Assembly: GCA_963924565.1 (NCBI GenBank)
Contig: OZ004611.1
Coordinates: 25,110,001-25,174,000 of the forward strand
Origin: Ascidiella aspersa
Lineage: Eukaryota
Direction of reading: 5' to 3'
DNA: 64,000 nucleotides
Under the pieces are notes generated by a model. It saw nothing but the letters and a program-made list of their open reading frames with translations. It was not told the DNA's origin and searched no databases. Of the stretch, positions 24,383-34,019 are shown in pieces. Numbering within the stretch: position 1 is the first letter of the stretch; each line of letters opens with the position of its first letter. Position numbers and translations under genes: made by a program.

Positions 24383-27151
24383 AAGTTTTGACTTTTCAAT
24401 ATGTCTTAGCCTGGTTTGAGAAATCTTACCAGTATAAACGCACCGTAGGTTTCCTAGATTCTAAGGGGCAAAGCGAAGGCCTTTGCCGCCAAACCTTCAA
24501 TTTATTTATTTATGCTTGGCTTTCGTTTCCTACTTGCGCATGAGACTTATTTATGGCATAAGGTTTTATGCCCTATAAAAAAATTACGGAGTGCCCTTTC
24601 AAAACAATTACGGAATCTATCCCAGTTAAGATCCTATCACTTTTGTATAGTCAAGTCAACAGGTTTTAAAACTCCGACAGTGTGATTGCATTTATTTCAA
24701 AAGTCCTTCAGTGTGAATTAAAATTCGCCTAAATGTGGCCTATACACAATACTATTAGTATGCAACATCTAGAACAAATGTAGTAGAACAAAAGTATGTG
24801 TGTAAGTGAGGAAGAAACCGGGTAGGCTAATCTTTATTTCTGTCCACGTTTAAGGTGTGGGTCTTTACGGCAAACCAAGTAAGAAATGTGGCTCCATGTT
24901 CTCTAATTGTTTGGCAAACTCTGTATCGTCTATAAAGCCCGCTCAGCAATGAAAATAAAAGGATGGACCACGTTGCCTTATTTAAATAAACACGCCATTT
25001 TAACCCACCATACCTAATACGTGGCGACAAACAGACATGCGAAGTGCGTGTATTGTGCGTATAGCGTCATAACGTCACACCAATAAAATGACCTGACTAT
25101 GGCCTGCGTTCTGTATGTTCATTACGCTTTAGGAGAGGACCCTTGTAAAGCTACCGCCTCGGGCCTTTTATCGGCGAGAGATAGTGCTTATACACAACGT
25201 CTTTTCACATACTTGTGGAATAGTAAAGCCTTTCTCGATTATACCGGTTTTAAGGCACATAAACTTGAAGGCGATTTACCTAAAATATATATTACAGAGG
25301 CGGTGATTGAAACAGTTTACAATTTAATATACATTTTAAAGAATATATCAGTTTATATAACTTAAAAATACTTTTTATACAAGTGTTCTATTTTAATGCT
25401 ATATTTGTTGCATATTTATATTAAAAGGGAAATCTAAGGCTCTTCTATACTTTGTTGGAATTTCACTGTAGCATTTTTTATGCACAGTACTGACATTACG
25501 AGTTACATGCAAATTGGTACATCCGTCGTTATATAACTTTACAAAGGCAACATAATAAGGTGCCAACACCTTGTTTGCTTCGCCACTATGCGTTCTTTTT
25601 ACTTTTTCGACATTTTAAATCACAAACATTGTTTATACTGGGATGTCATATAAGTCGGACGGTTAGGCTACTGTATGTAATTTCACAATCGAAAACAACC
25701 GTAGCCAGCGATCTAATAACCGAACCATAATTGCTTCTGTGAAATAAAAACAATTTCCTTTTATTTCGACTTCCTCTGTTCCTATTTTTCTGATGTTCCA
25801 GTGTTTTTCCCATTTGTAAGTTTAACTCAAAAGCTGAACTGAATACACTTTTTAAAATACATTTTTTAAATTAGTAATTAATTTTCTAACATACAGTAGC
25901 TCAGACTACTTTTTCTTTAGACCATTGCATTTGTTAATGGCACTTTATTTAACTACTTTAGAATAAACAACATATTTGTTGATTCCCTAGTTGGACAGTA
26001 GGCCTACAATATCTAAATATCCCCCCGTAATAAACACAAACACACGCTTTTGTTGGAAAACAAATTGCAGCGAATTCTGATAACAGCACGCACAGTCACA
26101 CACGCAAGTAGCACTCAATGCGCTAAATAACGAAAAAAACAGTAAATTGCGAAACTGGAAAGTTTTGACGAAAGTCCATATCTTTATTATTGTAGCTGTG
26201 GGTCCATACGATTTGTTTTAGGGAAGAAACAAGTGATTAAACTTCAGCTAAACCAGTTGTTTTTAATTTTTAAATACCAGAAACATACATTTTTTGTTAA
26301 AATATCAGTACAGCATTCATCGCCTTGGAAATTTAATTTTAGAACCATTTATTAAACGAATATTTGTTGCGAAAGACATAAAAGAACAAATTCGCAGGTT
26401 GAAGAAAAAACAGTCTTTACAATATCCAATACTAAGTACTGGTGCAAGTAAACAACAGACAAAAAGCTTAGCAACAAAGAAAAACATAATTCAGAACTTT
26501 GGGAAAAGCGTCGACATTTTACTTGGATCAGTTGCTTATAGCAGAACCCAAGAAAATCGCGGAACAAGACCGAATTTATTGCTAAAACGAAAATTTTAAA
26601 TATATAGCTTTAGAACAGCGGTAAGTCATAGTAATACAATAAGATTTTTAAGCGATGTATTTGCCGATTTAAATGTTAGGTATGCCTAACTTTTTATTTT
26701 TTTAACAAAATTGATTAGTGCTTCTCGATTTTCACAAAACAAAAGGGTTAGGTTCAAAAGTTAGCTGATTTGAAAGCACAGTCCGGAATTTAGTGGCAGA
26801 GGCTAACTTACAATGACTAAAAATATATCTTCGAGAGGTCGTAACCGAAAGACTGTAGAAAACTTTGGACAGCTCTTTCAAAACTCTTGAAATTTCCGAC
26901 TAAAGCAGGTAATATTCGTGATAACTGTAGGCGCTTGATGTTTAACATTTTCGTACAATCCTTCAGTAGAATGCAAGGCTATTTAAAGTCCAGGCGTTAT
27001 GAAAGTACCTATTTTTGCCAAGAACTGACCAAATTTTAAACGAACAACAGAGTTGTTTATAATAAGTCCATCTTTAAAGGACTGACTATATCGCCAATAA
27101 TTCTGTCTGTAAATCGGCATAAGCTGTTTCGAATTCCGCGGACGTCGAAAT

Positions 27152-28441
27152 CTAGGACTTCTTCATGACGAGACAGAGAGGTTGATCGCTGATCGCGTGA
27201 TTGACAGCCGGAGGTGTAGGAGCCGAAGCAAGGGAGGAACAACTGGACTGAGAGGTCCTCCTGGTTCTTGCAGTGAGCTCCAAGGGCATCATGTCCGGGC
27301 TGAGAGGTTGCGGAGTCGGGGTCCTCTTCCTTGGTGGCGGAGGACCGCTCATGGAAGGAGAAGGAGTCTCCCTAGATTGATGGGCTTTAGGAGGAAGCAT
27401 GTTGGGCTTTTTAATCGGAGGTTGGTACTCGGAGGAGTTTCCAAGGTCAGGTATCGGAAGAGGATAAGCTCGCGAGCTCCAGGGACTCTTGGTTCCGGCA
27501 GGAGGAGTCACGACCGGAAAGGAAGGGGAACTCTTCTCCCTGGAAGTCGACCTAGCGCGCGGAGGTTGCTGCGGAAGAGCGGAGGTGGAGGAAGATGGAC
27601 GGAGTTTCTTTTGACTCGCGGCGATCCGAGCTTGCATCTTGGAAGTGAGCTGTCCGTCCTTGAGCTGCGAATACAGCATCGCGGTGGCCTGGTCGTTCCT
27701 TCCTAAGCGCAACTGCTGCTCCTGGTGAATGCTAGGACGCCCTTGCCGCTGCGGATGCGGTTGCGCGGCAGCGGAGTGGCGCGGTTTGGAGAGCAGCATC
27801 CTCTGTGCAGCCGCGGCAGAAGAAGATGCGGCAACCTGCTGTTGCTGCTGCTGCTGCTGGGGATGCGGTCCGTGCTTCAACGACTTAACGAGCGCTTTCG
27901 TTCGTTCGATCGTCGTCTGGTAAGGGTCGTGGATCGTGTTGCCTCGTGGCTTCTGCATTTGCGGCTGCTGCAGTAGAGCGTTGCTGAGGCGCGCGTTAAG
28001 CTCGCTGGAAGGCGGCGGACCGTCGATCTGCGGCCTTTGGTTTATCATGGCGCGCAGTCTATCGGTGGAGAGGGCGTCCAGGGACCGCCTGTGGTGATTG
28101 GCTCCGTGGGCCGGGGCTATGTTCCTTTCGATTCTGCTAAAGCTGTTGTTGCCGGGTTGGTTAGGACGCGCCTGGAAGCTTCCCGAGGTTGGGAGCATCT
28201 TGGAGGGAGCTCTGACGAATGGCTTCACGGAAGTTTGCACCGCGGCTTGATGTCTCTGCTGTAGGGCCTGATGTTGTTGTTGTTGTTGTTGTTGATTTCG
28301 CTGCTGCTGTTGCTTTTGCTGCTGTTGCTGTTGATGGTGTTGCTGTAGTTTTTGCTGATGTCGTTGTTGTGAGGTGAGCTGACGTTGTTGTTGTTGCTTC
28401 TGAAGCTGTAGCTTGTGCTGCTGCTGTTGTAGCTGCTGCAG

Positions 28442-28475
<34 letters not shown>

Positions 28476-30277
28476 GTTGTTTTTGTGTTATTCTGCATCT
28501 GTGCGCGTCCGTTTACGTGTTGATAGCTGGAAGTGTACACAGACTCCAAGTTGGTCTGCGGCCTTCGCACGTTTCCGTTGCTCTCCGTACGGGATTTAAA
28601 CCCAGAACCCTCGGGTTTGAACCTAGGTGACGGGGCGTTGTGCGGGCGTTTGTTGGGAGACGAAAGGGGTCCTTGTTTAAGCGACGGGGCCGGCGTGACA
28701 GAAGTGGCAGCACCTTGCACCTGAGGGTTATTCGCGTTACCCATCGGATAGGTGGACTTGTCGTTCTGGAAGATGTTCCGGGTCGGCACTCCGTGTCGCA
28801 GCTGAGGAATTCCGTCGCTGCCTGTCATAACAAGCGGTGAGAAGTTACTGGAACTACTGCTGGTGCTGCTACTGGTCGGGGCTTTCGGAAGAATTGGTCT
28901 CTTGTGAGCAATCTTTCGATCCGGCTGCAGCTTAACGCTTCCCATTGAGTGACGCGCGGCTTCAAAAGCAGCCCTGTGCGCCGCCTCGTTGCTCAGCATA
29001 CTCAGCTTCTGGTTCAGGACAGAGTGGTTGTTGCTACTGGCGCTTGTCAGTTTCGGCCCGTTGGAACGGGCAACCGACTGAGGCACGCGCTGGCTGGTGC
29101 TGACGCTGGCCAGAAACTCGGTCGTTTTCTGCTGAGCAACGGCCGGCTTCAAAGTGGCGTCTTGAGGGTGGTTAGTTCCGGGAGCGCGCAGAAGAATAAA
29201 CTGACCAGACCTTCCCTGAGTGTTGTTGCCACTCGGGCGTTCTTGCGCGAGTGAAGCTTGCGGTAAGCGTGCGCCTATTGGGGTGTGTCCGTTGTTGGGA
29301 TGGGACACCGGTTCTTTGTTGAAAATCTGTTGAGAAGTAGTTCGTTGAGCGGGGGCGCCGTTTTGGCCACCGGCTTGCAGGCGTTGGTGATACGCGCTGT
29401 CTTGTTTATTGGCGGTGTGGTGCATGGGGTTGGTCGGTTTTCTACGGTTCTGGCGCGGCTGCGGGCTGGGCGTCTGTTTCACTTCGACGTTGCTGGGCAA
29501 GGTTTGGCGGACGAACGGCAGCAAATTGACGGCGTCGTCCAGTTTGACTTGAGCGCGCGGCGCCTGCGGAGTCACTTCTGGCACTTCGACCGGGGTGGGC
29601 GGTTTAACTCGGACGGCCTCGTCCACTGAGATGTTCAGCATTGCGTAGCTCTGAACGTGCTGCTTGCTCGGCGCTTTGCTGCCGCTCGAATTAGTTTCGT
29701 TCAGTGGCTTTGGAGCAATCGGCGAGACACGTTTGGGCTGGAGCGACTTAATGGCTTCACCGTTTGCTTCTTTTTCGGTTGTTGAAACGACTGGATTTTT
29801 GCCTTCTAAAGTGCGATTTTCATCCGGTTTCACTTCGGCCGGCTTTTGCGCGACTGCGTTTAATTTCGGCGCTTCGCTCTCGTTTGTCTTTGGTTTTTCG
29901 ACGGTGGTGAGCTGCACCATTCCCAGCAGCTCGATCTTGGCGTGATCTTCGCGATTCTTCACCGCCTCGGCGTTGTCCATGATGGCAGGTTCGCGGCGCG
30001 ACGGCAAACTGCTCGGAATCGGTTTTCGCGGCATCAGTTTCGGTAGCGGCTTAGGGGATTTCTTGGGTACTTTCTGGCTGGCGAAAAAGGCTTTGAGGTT
30101 CGGCATGGCCGACGACTCCATTTTGCGCTTCTTAGGGGCGTCTTTTTTCGCTTTGGCGTCCTTCGATTGGTTGCCGTTGCTGTTGTTGACGCCCACGTTG
30201 TCCCAGGTTATCGGCGAGAGTTTTCGTTTGAGCGATTTCGGTACGAAGAGGCCGTACTTCAGCTCCAACGTTTGGCT
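27152..30277 (-). CDS. BMI1: PCGF2/4 terminal coding exon 6: end of RAWUL (LELKY), NLS-like KRK/KKRK, ~1030-aa disordered Psc-like C-terminal region
   Basis: Acceptor TTTTTTCGCAG|AGC; 3126-nt open frame to TAG; markedly more GC-rich than its flanks; P/S/Q/N/K/R-rich. Confidence 0.9.
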
Positions 30278-33200
30278 CTGCGAAAAAACAAACGTTAATA
30301 ATGAAAAAAAGACAAACAAGTGTTCAACAACTGTGATTTTCAACAACTGTGAAGCAAGACAGGCTAGAAAAAGTGTATGACCGGAGGTTGTGAGTTCGCA
30401 CCTCACCGCAGGCTATACTTGCTTTTCTAGCCTGCCCGGCTTACATCATTGATCGACAGATTCGGTGAGTCTGCGATGGCTTGGTGTACAAACGTCAACA
30501 ACTGATGTTTTACTGAAGGTGACGATTTAAGTTCGTGGTTATTTAAAGTTAGCGACGATTTTTTTTATTTGTTTTCCACTTAAAATACATCTTATGTTTA
30601 AGGAAGATTAGCTATGCCGAAAAGGAAATTCTGAATCCGATAAACGGTTGAACTTACTAAGATAAAAGGCAAAATGATCGGTTTCCACACGTACACACAA
30701 AATTATTTAATAAACTAACCATTTTTAAAACCGGTGATAATATATTATTTGAAATAGCTAATTAACAAAATCATTCAATAGGTATATAAATAATTTTCTT
30801 TTAAAAATTGACCCTTTTTCTCCATAAACGCCTGAACTTACCACAGAACATGGAAAAATGTCCAAAATATCACCCAGGGTGTACTTGGGCGGAATAATGA
30901 CTTCGCCGCAAAATATCAGAACCTGAAACGATTAACAGAACGTTAGTAAACACATAAGAAAAATTGTATTTGGTGTGTACGACAAAAAGAGAAATAAGCG
31001 GTCTCGCGCGAAACCGAAATTTAAGAGCATTTTAACGAAAATTGTTTTAACGGTAAACTTGTTTACCCGGCCAATAGTTATGTCGCTTTTTGTGAAATTA
31101 TGTAGAATTCTGGTCTCTGGACTATATAACCTGTAGTTATGATTCTATTCTTATAAATTGGCGGGCCTGATTTTATGACTCTATTGTTTCTACGTTTAAT
31201 ACAGAAAGGACCTTTAGGCGGTATTGCTTCTACGCCACGTCATTCACGTGGAAATAAGTGACTTTACATATTACTCTTAATGGACGATGTTCCATCCTTC
31301 CAACAACAAAAATGCACCTAGAATTCCCGAAGAGGCCTTTTTGACGTTTCCAAAAATCTATATAATTTTGCTATGATTTGGTCCTGTGGTCTCACGCTAA
31401 AAGGGGACTTCTAGGTTGTTTTTATTATAACAAAAAAAGGAGAAATCGAGTTGTATTCACAAAGCAATCACCTGACAACCAATACATGAACGCTATCACT
31501 CTAAACCAGTGGTGATTAAACTTTTTCCTTGGTGCACCCCTTTAAAATAATCAAACAATTCTCGCACTTATAGAATTGCTTACATTACAAAACCATTGTA
31601 ATTTTCCATACAAGTAACTGATAACACAGTAACACAATACCAAAATGTGAGTTAGTTTTACAATAAACTGAGCAAAGAAATAATATACGGTAATATATTT
31701 TCAGTGTCTGATTCAGCACCCCCGCACTCCCTTGGAACAGTTGTCGCACCCCCTGGTTAAGAAACTCTGCTTTAAGCAAAGGGTTTTCCGGTAATTTTAA
31801 CGTTAGGATTAACATGCCGACCCTCTATTACCTCGACTTCTTCCGTTTCTTTAAACTTGAGCCGAATCAGCTTCTGGATGTGTTCGACTGTTACGTCATA
31901 GGCGCAGCGGAGGTATCGCTTGGAGCCTTCTTTTTCCAATTCCCGCCACTCGCTGCCCGCATCCGATTTTCGGTTTCGCCTGTGACGTCGACAATGAATC
32001 GGATAATTGGGCGATTTTTACGCGACAAAAGAGAAATTATTATTGAACTGCTTCACGCATTTTGCGCTTTTTGGAAACCATGGCGCGAAAATGTACCAGG
32101 ATGACAACAAGCATAAATAATTCAAAAGCAATTCGACTGGGATATTCGACGTGCGTTTTTTAAATCTATATATTTTGCGTTTAAGAACTAATCTTCCGAA
32201 ACAAACAACAAAACTGGAATCATTGTCCAGCAATTTAAGTTATATGTCGGTGTGGCACATAAAGGAATAACTTAAAACTCAACCAGACAGTTCAGTTTCG
32301 CACGAGTTTTATCTTTTTAAGTGTCCAAGTATGAAAAAAGGTGTTTTTTGTAGTCATTAAATTTTGGTTTTCGCTAATCTAAAATGCACAAATCGTGTAA
32401 TGGCCGATATTTGCCTGTTTTAAACAGTGAGAATTACGTGTAAAGATCATTCATGTTTCGTATAACAATTTACCTGGCTTTTGTGGCTAGGATAAACAGG
32501 CCAATCTAAGATTTCCTAGCACTTTTTTACCTTTTAAATGGTTCTATCGACAGGCAAAGTTTCCTTGCGATTTTCCTCGGGTTGGCCAAGTTTTCATCAG
32601 CCTCGCCAAGGTCTTCCGGCGTTAATCCCTTTAAAACTGCAAAAAAGGTTGAGAATAAATCACGGGCCCCTTCATTTAAATCCCGAGTCCAACTCCGGCT
32701 AAATGTGCAATTTCGTCGAGTCCAGAGTCAGGCTCCTATTCTACAGCCTGTATTTCACCCATTTGCCTAAATAAAATAAGGTAATTACTTGTAGGGGTGT
32801 CCTTCAATTCATCCACCAACACTACATATGTGGAAAATATTCCGCCATTTGCTATTCCAGTTTTACAATTTACAGTTTTCGGCCTCATTAGTTTCGAACC
32901 GTGGCGATGCGCATGCGCACGTCGGACTCAGGACTCGGATAGTTTTACGTAGTCCTACTCCCGAGTCCCGAGTCCCCATTCCGACAGCAAAACAACCGAC
33001 CCCGTCGAGTCCAGCGTCCTGAGTCCGCCTAAAACTCCGAAGACCTGGTTTTAGGACACCCCGTTAAGTAGGGCTCCTGTAAATTGGTGTAAGCCCGAGT
33101 CCGTCTAAAACTCAGAAGCCCTGGTTTTGGGACACCCCTTTCTAAGTAGGGCCCCGGTAATTTGTTGTAAGAGTTTTATCTCACCGTCTTGCTTGACCAT

Positions 33201-34019
33201 TTGGTGTTCGCTCCAGAACTTTCTCCGTCGCTGCATTTCGCCTTGACGAAGTCCAGGCACCAACTTATAGACGATCTCCTGCAGCGACTGGTCACTTCGT
33301 ATGTTGAGCAGGGGGCGAGTCTTGTGGACCTGGACTCTGCAAACCGGGCACGACTTGTGGTCGGTCAGGTAGCGGACGATGCACGTGCGGCAGACTGCAA
33401 AAGACATGGAGAAACGCAGTGTTACTGTTGTTTTTAAACTGTGCTACACGCCTATCACTTAAGTCGTTATACTTTTTGAGCCGACGCGCTAACTGCTTTT
33501 ATGGGATTACGAAAATTTATGCAAATATTTTTGTGGTTGTTTAAATGTATATTGCTTTTTGTTCAGTCTAGCGCTGCAGATTTGCTTAATTGCTTGAGAG
33601 AATTGGTTTCTTGCCAATAGGTGGTACGCGACAAAAAAGGCTAAAAAAAACTATTTTAACTTATTTTTTTAATTTTCGGTCGTAAACCGGGGGAATATTG
33701 TTGGCAGGCCTTTAGTATTTTTATCCTCCTGGAGGGCTTTTATTTAGATACCCCCCTCTACAACATGTTTGGTTAATGAAGCATGACAATCTGAGAAACG
33801 AGGTACAGTATAAACCGCCTAACTGCTCTATTGCGTAGGCAAAACGTACATTCCACGCAAAACGGCATTAAATTTCAAATTCAAATTTCGATCGCATTGC
33901 AACTTACATGAGTGTAAGCATTCTATGATGGTGGTGGCATCGACAAAATAACCGTCACAAAGGGAACAGGTCACGTGAGCGTTCATCTCACGAACAGGGA
34001 GGTTAACTTCTTGGTCCAT
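27152..34019 (-). CDS. BMI1: Polycomb group RING finger protein, PCGF2/PCGF4 (BMI1/MEL18/Psc-like); spliced CDS of 6 exons, 1260 aa
   Basis: Spliced translation: [86 protein letters not shown] (C3HC4 RING collinear with BMI1 residues 1-86). Then [50 protein letters not shown] (RAWUL), then a long low-complexity tail. Exon lengths 112+210+106+148+81+3126=3783; intron phases 1,1,2,0,0 are consistent. PCGF2 versus PCGF4 cannot be resolved; likely a pro-ortholog. Confidence 0.93.
28255..28474 (-). repeat. CAA/CAG trinucleotide tract encoding a polyglutamine-rich segment
   Basis: Runs of (TTG)n/(CTG)n on the + strand, including a pure run of about 11 CAA codons at ~28442-28474. A second short polyQ lies at ~27836-27859. 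Confidence 0.95.
30350..30494 (+). mobile_element. tRNA-derived element, truncated copy with inverted 5' piece, in PCGF intron 5
   Basis: 30375-30490 matches 15683-15800; 30352-30373 is the reverse complement of the element's internal segment; flanked by TCAACAACTG direct repeats. Confidence 0.72.
30842..30922 (-). CDS. BMI1: PCGF2/4 coding exon 5 (RAWUL)
   Basis: Acceptor TTTCAG|, 81 nt, encodes [27 protein letters not shown] (cf. BMI1 YTLMDI); donor GTG|GTAAGT. Confidence 0.87.
31507..31769 (+). mobile_element. hAT MITE inside PCGF intron 4
   Basis: CAGTGGTGATTAAAC...GGTTAAGAAACTCTG, GCACCCC repeats, TSD CTCTAAAC/CTTTAAGC (6/8 match). Confidence 0.7.
31832..31979 (-). CDS. BMI1: PCGF2/4 coding exon 4 (RAWUL)
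   Basis: Acceptor CACAG|G; encodes [49 protein letters not shown] (KRYLRC signature); donor GAG|GTAATA. Not in the ORF track. Confidence 0.88.
32531..32636 (-). CDS. BMI1: PCGF2/4 coding exon 3 (linker and RAWUL start)
   Basis: Acceptor TTTTTTGCAG; encodes [35 protein letters not shown], resembling BMI1 EDRGEVADED..ISLSIEFF; donor AG|GTAAAA. Not in the ORF track. Confidence 0.88.
32792..33170. mobile_element. MITE-like element in PCGF intron 2 with duplicated right end
   Basis: TAGGGGTGTCC (32792) is inverted against GGACACCCC (~33053 and ~33130); GAGTCC/GGACTC repeats; ~76-bp tandem duplication at 33021-33170. Confidence 0.6.
33185..33394 (-). CDS. BMI1: PCGF2/4 coding exon 2 (RING C-half and helix)
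   Basis: Acceptor TTTTGCAG|TC; encodes [40 protein letters not shown]; donor G|GTGAGA. Confidence 0.93.
33908..34019 (-). CDS. BMI1: PCGF2/4 coding exon 1 (RING N-half: CxxC, CxH)
   Basis: ATG at 34019 in AAAAAATG context; translates to ...ECLHS; donor T|GTAAGT after 33908. Confidence 0.93.

Follow-up and report, generated by a model that had tools for sequence, protein, structure and literature searches.

Does the core of Polycomb repressive complex 1 (PRC1) itself carry a docking site for another co-repressor? Ties between PRC1 and other co-repressors are known mainly from vertebrates (CBX4 with CtBP) and from fly proteomics, where no direct contact is known. The question is raised by a gene in a 64,000-nucleotide stretch of the ascidian Ascidiella aspersa genome (contig OZ004611.1, positions 25,110,001 to 25,174,000; the whole stretch is called the window below). 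Its predicted product, a Psc-type PCGF2/4 protein, ends in two short motifs, PLELT and PLCLV, that resemble the PxDLS-type ligands of CtBP. Our comparisons indicate that the linear motifs at the end of this ascidian PCGF2/4 form a genuine module that is deeply conserved. Recruitment of CtBP by at least one of the two motifs is in our view the best explanation, although we would put its chances at about even.

The reverse complement of 26900-27600 reads GAC ATG ATG CCC TTG GAG CTC ACT GCA AGA over the PLELT region, and the protein ends with the codons GAT CAA CCT CTC TGT CTC GTC ATG AAG AAG TCC TAG (PLCLV-MKKS-stop). The positions that the initial annotation gave for the motifs, 35 codons apart, were confirmed by this direct reading (Table 1). 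We searched the 1041-residue tail encoded by the last exon with a strict CtBP pattern, P-[LVIPME]-[DENS]-[LM]-[VASTRG], modelled on the ELM entry LIG_CtBP_PxDLS_1, and PLELT was its sole match. When the whole tail was shuffled 20,000 times, at least one strict match arose somewhere with P = 0.26 and within the last 60 residues with P = 0.016. The first of these values, one match in 26% of shuffles, is what a chance resemblance without function has in its favor. None of the 20,000 shuffles of the whole tail gave two loose matches within the last 60 residues; when the last 200 residues were shuffled, 1 of 20,000 did.

Conservation was profiled across eight distinct ascidian sequences: the protein of the window, Phallusia P0001, Ciona P0002, Clavelina lepadiformis P0016, Styela clava P0025, P0003, P0011, and P0004. 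A search with the last 152 residues of the window's protein gave six matches, four of which were accepted (P0001, P0003, P0002, and P0016). The other two, P0014 and P0015, were judged to be low-complexity, with many matching stretches and none at the C-terminus, and were dropped from all counts. The tails of the relatives are only 20-42% identical to that of the window. PLCLV is present in all eight sequences, including Styela, with a score of 1.00 and rank 1 among 1037 five-residue segments ordered by mean column conservation; PLELT is present in six of the eight (score 0.875, rank 7 of 1037). The background is 0.32 in the 30 residues before PLELT, 0.38 in the linker between the motifs, and 0.37 over the tail. 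Twenty-six columns are invariant across the eight sequences, and the terminal block contributes seven of them (P, L, C, L, V, K, and K). Whether the motifs are conserved islands had been set beforehand as a test, and both stand far above the flanking tail. Together, the conservation ranks, which hold across ascidian orders, and the shuffles effectively refute pure chance, to which we assign almost no probability.

Where both motifs are present (six sequences), the spacing between them is 26-36 residues, and basic residues follow both motifs in every ortholog (ARTRR and MKK in the window). The extreme C-terminal ends vary among orthologs (KKS, KKA, KKT, KK, and KKNSGD). A PDZ ligand was excluded because of this variable end, and a CaaX prenylation box (C-L-V-M) because 3-7 residues lie beyond it in every ortholog. 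The HP1 chromoshadow ligand PxVxL requires a central Val; it was excluded because PLCLV has Cys, and PLELT has Glu, in the middle. Right after PLELT there is an R-x-R-x-x-S site in the window (ARTRRTS), P0001 (SRTRKSS), and P0003 (SRTRKLS), which is not present in Ciona or Clavelina. Phosphorylation at this site could regulate whatever binds PLELT.

The protein that carries these motifs was identified exon by exon, each exon being searched singly against domain and structure libraries. Among solved structures, exon 2 is nearest to BMI-1 (E 4e-31 to 8e-27), well ahead of PCGF1 (9e-20), PCGF5 (2e-19), and PCGF6 (6e-4). The Pfam matches to RING models are partial and below their cut-offs (E 4.6e-5 and 0.012) because the RING finger is split across exons 1 and 2. 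Similarly, exon 4 matches the RAWUL domain (PF16207) with E 1.5e-5 and 25.8 bits, under the cut-off of 33.5, because this exon covers no more than profile positions 1-34 of 65. Exon 5 and the beginning of exon 6 encode the remainder of RAWUL, which can be aligned with P0001 and P0002; for both of these proteins, PF16207 is among the precomputed Pfam domains. The tail matches proteins named "Polycomb group protein Psc" in Phallusia mammillata (P0001, 1166 residues) and Ciona intestinalis (P0002, 1188 residues), with 63% and 48% identity, respectively, over the last 152 residues, which places the window in a phlebobranch-like ascidian nearer to Phallusia than to Ciona. The gene is, by sequence, an ascidian PCGF2/4 (Psc/BMI1-type) core subunit of PRC1, and the assignment to the PRC1 core made in the initial annotation was correct.

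To place the motifs among other animals, we surveyed 138 proteins, 120 of which were the best 120 of 345 matches to Clavelina P0016; 13 tunicate and 2 low-complexity proteins were set aside. Matches were limited to 0.55-1.75 times the length of the query (1129 residues), that is, about 621-1976 residues, which excludes BMI1 and MEL18 of normal length, and vertebrate ends are represented only by long read-through gene models. No amphioxus, echinoderm, hemichordate, or cnidarian protein is among the best 120 of 345 matches listed. An earlier alignment-based search for homologues had scored the 8000 candidates that shared most words, many of them through poly-Q, and missed Ciona.

Among the proteins surveyed, 11 Psc-like proteins from molluscs, annelids, and a brachiopod (10,787 residues) contain five strict matches, and four of the 11 have one in their last 60 residues (five of 11 with the loose pattern). 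The annelid Ridgeia (P0030 and the near-identical P0028) has PLELT followed by TKKSR, with 39 residues after the motif, as in the ascidians. Strict matches near the C-terminus are also found in Patella (P0129, PLNLS then KRD) and the sea slug Plakobranchus (P0005, PLNLV then KRD), and Paralvinella (P0124, PLDLH then K) matches the loose pattern only. No near-end motif was found in Lingula, Littorina, Batillaria (a partial protein), Babylonia, Nucella, or Mercenaria. The other 112 long PCGF proteins in the survey (insects, chelicerates, crustaceans, vertebrate read-through BMI1, and others; 128,081 residues) contain 11 strict matches, a rate of 0.086 per 1000 residues, and none has one in its last 60 residues. 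These 112 proteins are not independent, as many are from ants, bees, and birds, and taxa were assigned from names. The third position of the lophotrochozoan motif varies between E and N (D in the loose Paralvinella case), as it does in known ligands. The same pattern class, in the same relative place and with a variable third position, is what would be expected of a real CtBP site. In the Ridgeia-type proteins (P0030 and P0028) and P0005, the PxDLS-type motif is followed by a short hydrophobic run preceded by S-N-S(-D), resembling the end of Ciona. The two-part layout, beyond the first motif alone, may therefore be old.

Several observations weigh against CtBP docking. PLCLV lies outside the strict pattern, with Cys at position 3, and a literature search found no printed CtBP ligand with Cys at this position; as a whole word, PLCLV occurred only in an unrelated polymer paper. 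This Cys is invariant in 8/8 ascidians, whereas position 3 of CtBP ligands varies (D, N, S, or E), which hints at a different or additional constraint on PLCLV. At the site of PLELT, Styela clava P0025 and P0004 have PLRTI / PLHPT and only the terminal block is kept, so that the canonical motif is dispensable in one order. Moreover, in the accessible text of PMC5126810, the FOXP2 motif PLNLV is not essential for CtBP binding, and a pattern match alone is therefore weak evidence. Finally, we built a profile of the ascidian C-terminal end (47 columns from six sequences; P0025 and P0004, without PLELT, were left out) and compared it with the 123 non-tunicate proteins. No match was significant. 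The two Ridgeia proteins scored best, over the part of the profile that holds PLELT (5.8 bits with E 0.17, and 5.4 bits with E 0.22), and Plakobranchus ranked eighth, at the PLCLV segment (E 2.4). Since the profile is not significant, homology of the lophotrochozoan and ascidian motifs is not established. The initial annotation had described paired CtBP-type motifs: PLELT stands as a canonical one, but PLCLV does not because of its Cys, and the pairing fails in the Styela-type sequences.

These observations bring in a second explanation, a division of labor in which PLELT would be the CtBP ligand and the terminal block DQPLCLVxKK a different motif, for example a SUMO-interaction-type strand or a strand-addition contact within PRC1. 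SUMO-interaction motifs have a [VIL]-x-[VIL]-[VIL] core next to an acidic or phospho-Ser flank, and their flanks are usually acidic. LCLV fits this hydrophobic-x-hydrophobic-hydrophobic core and is preceded by S/D/E-rich residues in all orthologs (8/8), and PLELT does not fit; however, the downstream flank is invariably KK, which is atypical of such motifs. A divided function would account for the invariance of the Cys and of V-x-KK in 8/8, which is stricter than CtBP ligands need, for the position of PLCLV outside the strict pattern, and for the persistence of the terminal block in Styela without PLELT. It is also consistent with Ridgeia, where PLELT is followed 39 residues on by a hydrophobic end preceded by SNSD, like that of Ciona, and with the short hydrophobic run near the end, after the PxDLS-type motif, in Plakobranchus and Patella. 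Yet the likeness of Ridgeia comes from one sequence and is not significant, and those mollusc motifs whose flanks come closest to the terminal block (acidic-Q-P-L-N-L-V/S-K-R) belong to the canonical CtBP type. We consider a divided function unlikely overall, while giving it appreciable weight.

CtBP docking would require a CtBP with an intact binding region, and we searched the genome for the gene (assembly of 308.6 Mb in 75 contigs). It is found on contig C2 (G000:C2) at about 15.29 Mb (L001), with E 5e-31 to CtBP1. The first two coding exons located score E 8e-21 and 1e-22 against solved CtBP1/2, to which they are nearly identical, and in the first of them 38 of 41 aligned residues are identical to solved CtBP1. 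The PxDLS-binding cleft is said to have been located by Nardini and colleagues, in 2003, in the N-terminal region of CtBP. CtBP is thus present and, as far as its exons can be aligned, this binding region is nearly unchanged.

The genome also holds a compact CBX-like gene on contig C1 (G000:C1) at about 28.105 Mb, found as three pieces (L009 1477-2049, minus strand; L012 267-521 and 614-697, both minus strand). One piece is the last exon, which encodes both an AT-hook and a C-box (PF17218, 23.4 bits, above the cut-off); the others are an AT-hook exon and the second half of a chromodomain. Two AT-hook-like GRP/RGRKP stretches occur in all. No strict or loose CtBP motif is present in these three pieces, which form an incomplete model of one CBX-like gene; a second weak C-box match, on C7, lay outside this check. 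It had been proposed to check whether the CBX of this species lacks a motif of its own. This is the case for the three pieces of the one gene, and for the whole set of CBX genes the question is only partly answered.

We infer the following mechanism, in which the partner, the binding of both motifs, and the bivalent mode are all conjectural. The tail would end in a two-part module, PLELT with basic residues and then, 26-36 residues on, PLCLV-x-KK at or next to the C-terminus. This module would dock CtBP through the hydrophobic PxDLS-binding cleft of the N-terminal domain of CtBP, with PLELT as the canonical ligand and PLCLV as a variant ligand close to PLSLV in Hairy and PLNLV in FOXP1/2. As CtBP is at least a dimer, a single flexible tail that carries both motifs could bind two CtBP protomers simultaneously. 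PRC1 would in this way be coupled physically to the CtBP complex through its PCGF subunit.

Parts of this mechanism have counterparts in known systems. CBX4 (HPC2) and Xenopus Pc reportedly contact CtBP through a PxDLS-type motif, as attributed to Sewalt and colleagues in 1999. CBX4 not only binds CtBP but also sumoylates it and recruits it to Polycomb bodies (accessible text of PMC2745409). In these cases, as predicted from the motifs for ascidians, a PRC1 subunit makes the contact, but the carrier is the chromodomain subunit, whereas the ascidian candidate is PCGF2/4 with two motifs at its extreme C-terminus. Two CtBP-binding motifs are also found in the C-terminal E-tail of TCF7L1/TCF7L2 (accessible text of PMC8651982). 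The pairing in a C-terminal tail is like that of ascidian Psc, although TCF7L1/TCF7L2 are DNA-binding transcription factors and Psc is a core subunit of a chromatin complex. Knirps has the CtBP motif PMDLS (PMC9890238). Variants without Asp that end in V or A occur near the protein C-terminus (accessible text of PMC1950541); Ser versus Cys is the sole difference between the PLSLV of Hairy and PLCLV. In the same text these variants are single motifs of questioned physiological relevance, whereas ascidian Psc has two motifs. PLNLV is the CtBP ligand motif of FOXP1/2 (accessible texts of PMC5126810 and PMC6586819). P0005 has an identical pentapeptide, and PLCLV differs from it at one residue, but the FOXP motif is internal and the ascidian one C-terminal. 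Polycomb group proteins and CtBP are already functionally linked: in flies, subunits of the CtBP complex co-purify with Scm, Pc, and E(z) (accessible text of PMC4470282), and in Psip1-/- cells the Hox loci lose Bmi1 together with Ctbp1 (accessible text of PMC4132756).

The initial annotation saw in the motifs a rewiring of PRC1 recruitment in "this lineage". This is probably too narrow, as Psc-like proteins of molluscs and annelids have PLNLS, PLNLV, and PLELT close to their C-terminal end. With these motifs, inheritance is as likely as rewiring, and the sequence comparison suggests that the site came down from an early bilaterian Psc-type protein and did not originate in tunicates. In the fullest form of this scenario, a CtBP dock near the C-terminus would be ancestral in bilaterian PCGF2/4. 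It would have been kept in ascidians (doubled, or paired with the terminal block), some annelids, and some molluscs. Insects would have lost it, and so would vertebrates, along with the long tail; in vertebrates the contact would have passed to a CBX paralogue. We offer this scenario tentatively, as one that has a fair share of the probability but is more likely wrong than right. If it is true, the coupling of PRC1 to CtBP is old and the carrier subunit was swapped during evolution.

The composition of the tail bears on a third explanation, in which neither motif binds CtBP. The initial annotation described about 1000 residues of low-complexity sequence. The length agrees with the 1041-codon exon, but the low complexity holds only in part: alignment with Phallusia and Ciona reveals about 12 conserved islands. 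The tail is rich in Q, S, and P and strongly basic (143 K+R and 59 D+E, net charge +84). AlphaFold2, run on the tail with the eight-sequence alignment, gave a predicted local distance difference test (pLDDT) score below 50 in 897 of 1041 residues, and the tail is predicted to be disordered apart from a helix at residues 418-446 and a poly-Q helix at 601-677. Residues 933-1035, which contain the motifs, have pLDDT below 50 and no predicted secondary structure. The motifs might then be kept for another partner, for phosphorylation beside PLELT, or for contacts of the tail with DNA or nucleosomes as in the C-terminal region of Drosophila PSC. With about 12 other conserved islands in the tail, conservation alone names no partner, and the R-x-R-x-x-S site after PLELT in the window, P0001, and P0003 would suit phosphorylation. 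The Drosophila PSC C-terminal region is, like the ascidian tail, a long, basic, and disordered tail on a PCGF2/4 core, and a compaction role is described for such tails (accessible text of bioRxiv 2020.03.18.997064). No sequence similarity was seen between this Drosophila region and the ascidian tail, and four dipteran Psc proteins (P0007, P0008, P0010, and P0012) have no strict match anywhere. However, PLELT is an exact match to a well-defined pattern that is rare in the 112 other long PCGF proteins, and molluscs and an annelid have this pattern class in the corresponding place, where position 3 is E, N, or D (D in the loose case only) as in known ligands. We regard it as improbable that neither motif binds CtBP, and prefer CtBP docking by at least one of them.

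Look-alikes of the last 57 residues in the ESM Atlas were not used as evidence: the best reached 0.80 (a ZNF238 fragment) and NRIP1 ranked second with 0.77, and one in three shuffled proteins attains 0.8.

Our literature search found no paper describing a CtBP motif on a Psc or PCGF protein, and none with PLELT as a whole word. In the accessible text of the PRC1-evolution preprint cited above there are no occurrences of CtBP, and Ciona is excluded from its PCGF table. If true, a conserved CtBP-type dock on the PCGF core would provide a concrete, testable contact point in non-vertebrate animals, and the same link between complexes could move between subunits. Psc-type "low-complexity" tails would then be strings of conserved linear motifs, beyond mere charge carriers. 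Ciona and Phallusia are amenable to electroporation, which makes the CtBP prediction directly testable.

The gene lies on the minus strand, and its six exons, assembled from RNA-seq joints and from splice sites (GT/AG) read in the sequence, give 1260 residues in total (Table 1). The acceptor of the last exon is a polypyrimidine tract followed by cag|AGC, with cag at 30278-30280, and its coding part, 30277-27155, has 1041 codons. The mechanical open reading frame 27152-30406 (1084 residues, GTG start at 30406) overshoots this boundary and includes 43 intronic codons. The joint from exon 6 to exon 5 is supported by two RNA-seq reads (run X5) and one spliced contig (run X2). The same contig contains the joint from exon 5 to exon 4, where a cut two places further right fits equally. 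The reads of run X5 have a single orientation and span the last exon to at least 26500; first mates are on the plus strand only, consistent with minus-strand RNA. We therefore dismissed an antisense open reading frame at 27182-27706 on the plus strand. Over 27152-27290, runs X1, X2, and X5 contain no sequence variant, and no splice joint touches that stretch.

Table 1 Exons, terminal motifs, and other features of the PCGF2/4 gene (positions in the window)
Feature	Position	Strand	Description
Exon 1	33908-34019	-	ATG at 34019, first half of RING finger; open reading frame; Pfam zf-C3HC4 E 0.012; donor GTAAGT
Exon 2	33185-33394	-	Second half of RING and conserved stretch beyond; Pfam RING models E 4.6e-5; PDB BMI-1 E 4e-31; splice sites read
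Exon 3	32531-32636	-	Linker; splice sites read, matched by eye to P0001
Exon 4	31832-31979	-	RAWUL start; Pfam RAWUL E 1.5e-5; splice sites read and RNA joint
Exon 5	30842-30922	-	RAWUL, 27 codons (VLIFCGEV...FPCSV); joints 30277->30842 and 30920->31830; AG/GT sites read
Exon 6 (last)	27152-30277	-	RAWUL end and 1041-residue basic tail; stop codon 27152-27154
3' untranslated region (at least)	26500-27151	-	Unbroken stranded X5 reads, X1 and X2 contigs across the stop; at least 650 bases
PLELT	27272-27286	-	Last-exon residues 998-1002; about 1217-1221 of the model
PLCLV	27167-27181	-	Last-exon residues 1033-1037; about 1252-1256 of the 1260-residue model
Terminal block including PLCLV	27158-27187	-	Mean column score 0.90 (whole tail 0.37)
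Linker between motifs	27182-27271	-	30 residues; mean column score 0.38, at background
R-x-R-x-x-S site	27254-27271	-	Directly after PLELT
Conserved island	27455-27505	-	Last-exon residues 925-941
Q-rich tract	28247-28477	-	Last-exon residues 601-677
Predicted helical element	28940-29026	-	Last-exon residues 418-446
RRKPTNP island	29420-29446	-	Contains R278, R279, K280, P281, and P284
Putative intronic repeat	30427-30613		Word depth about 106,000 (run X1 contigs)
Putative intronic repeat	31549-31735		Word depth about 3,000 (run X1 contigs)

Some features of the tail and gene lie apart from the terminal module. The predicted helical element is the only confidently folded part of the tail besides poly-Q (helices 418-426 and 430-446; pLDDT of the block 73-87). 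It covers a conserved island in which H434, A437, R442, and M445 are invariant in the eight sequences, and on the basis of the model it could offer some other partner a helical docking site. The island at residues 925-941 has an S-P site and is nearly invariant in the six non-Styela ascidian sequences, and is degenerate in Styela and P0004. The RRKPTNP island is kept in Phallusia and Ciona, and the five residues listed for it are invariant. The Q-rich tract, of about 77 residues with interruptions by K, L, H, and R, is absent at this place in Phallusia and Ciona; the analysis of RNA-seq reads skipped 28263-28489 as a repeat. Two introns contain stretches of very high word depth in run X1 contigs, compared with about 50-60 elsewhere, with many loose ends at 30439-30482, and these look like inserted high-copy repeats. 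In run X4, which carries a second organism label, a fraction of 0.20 of the sampled last-exon words was found at 95% likeness or more; this run is presumably from a close relative or a mislabelled sample.

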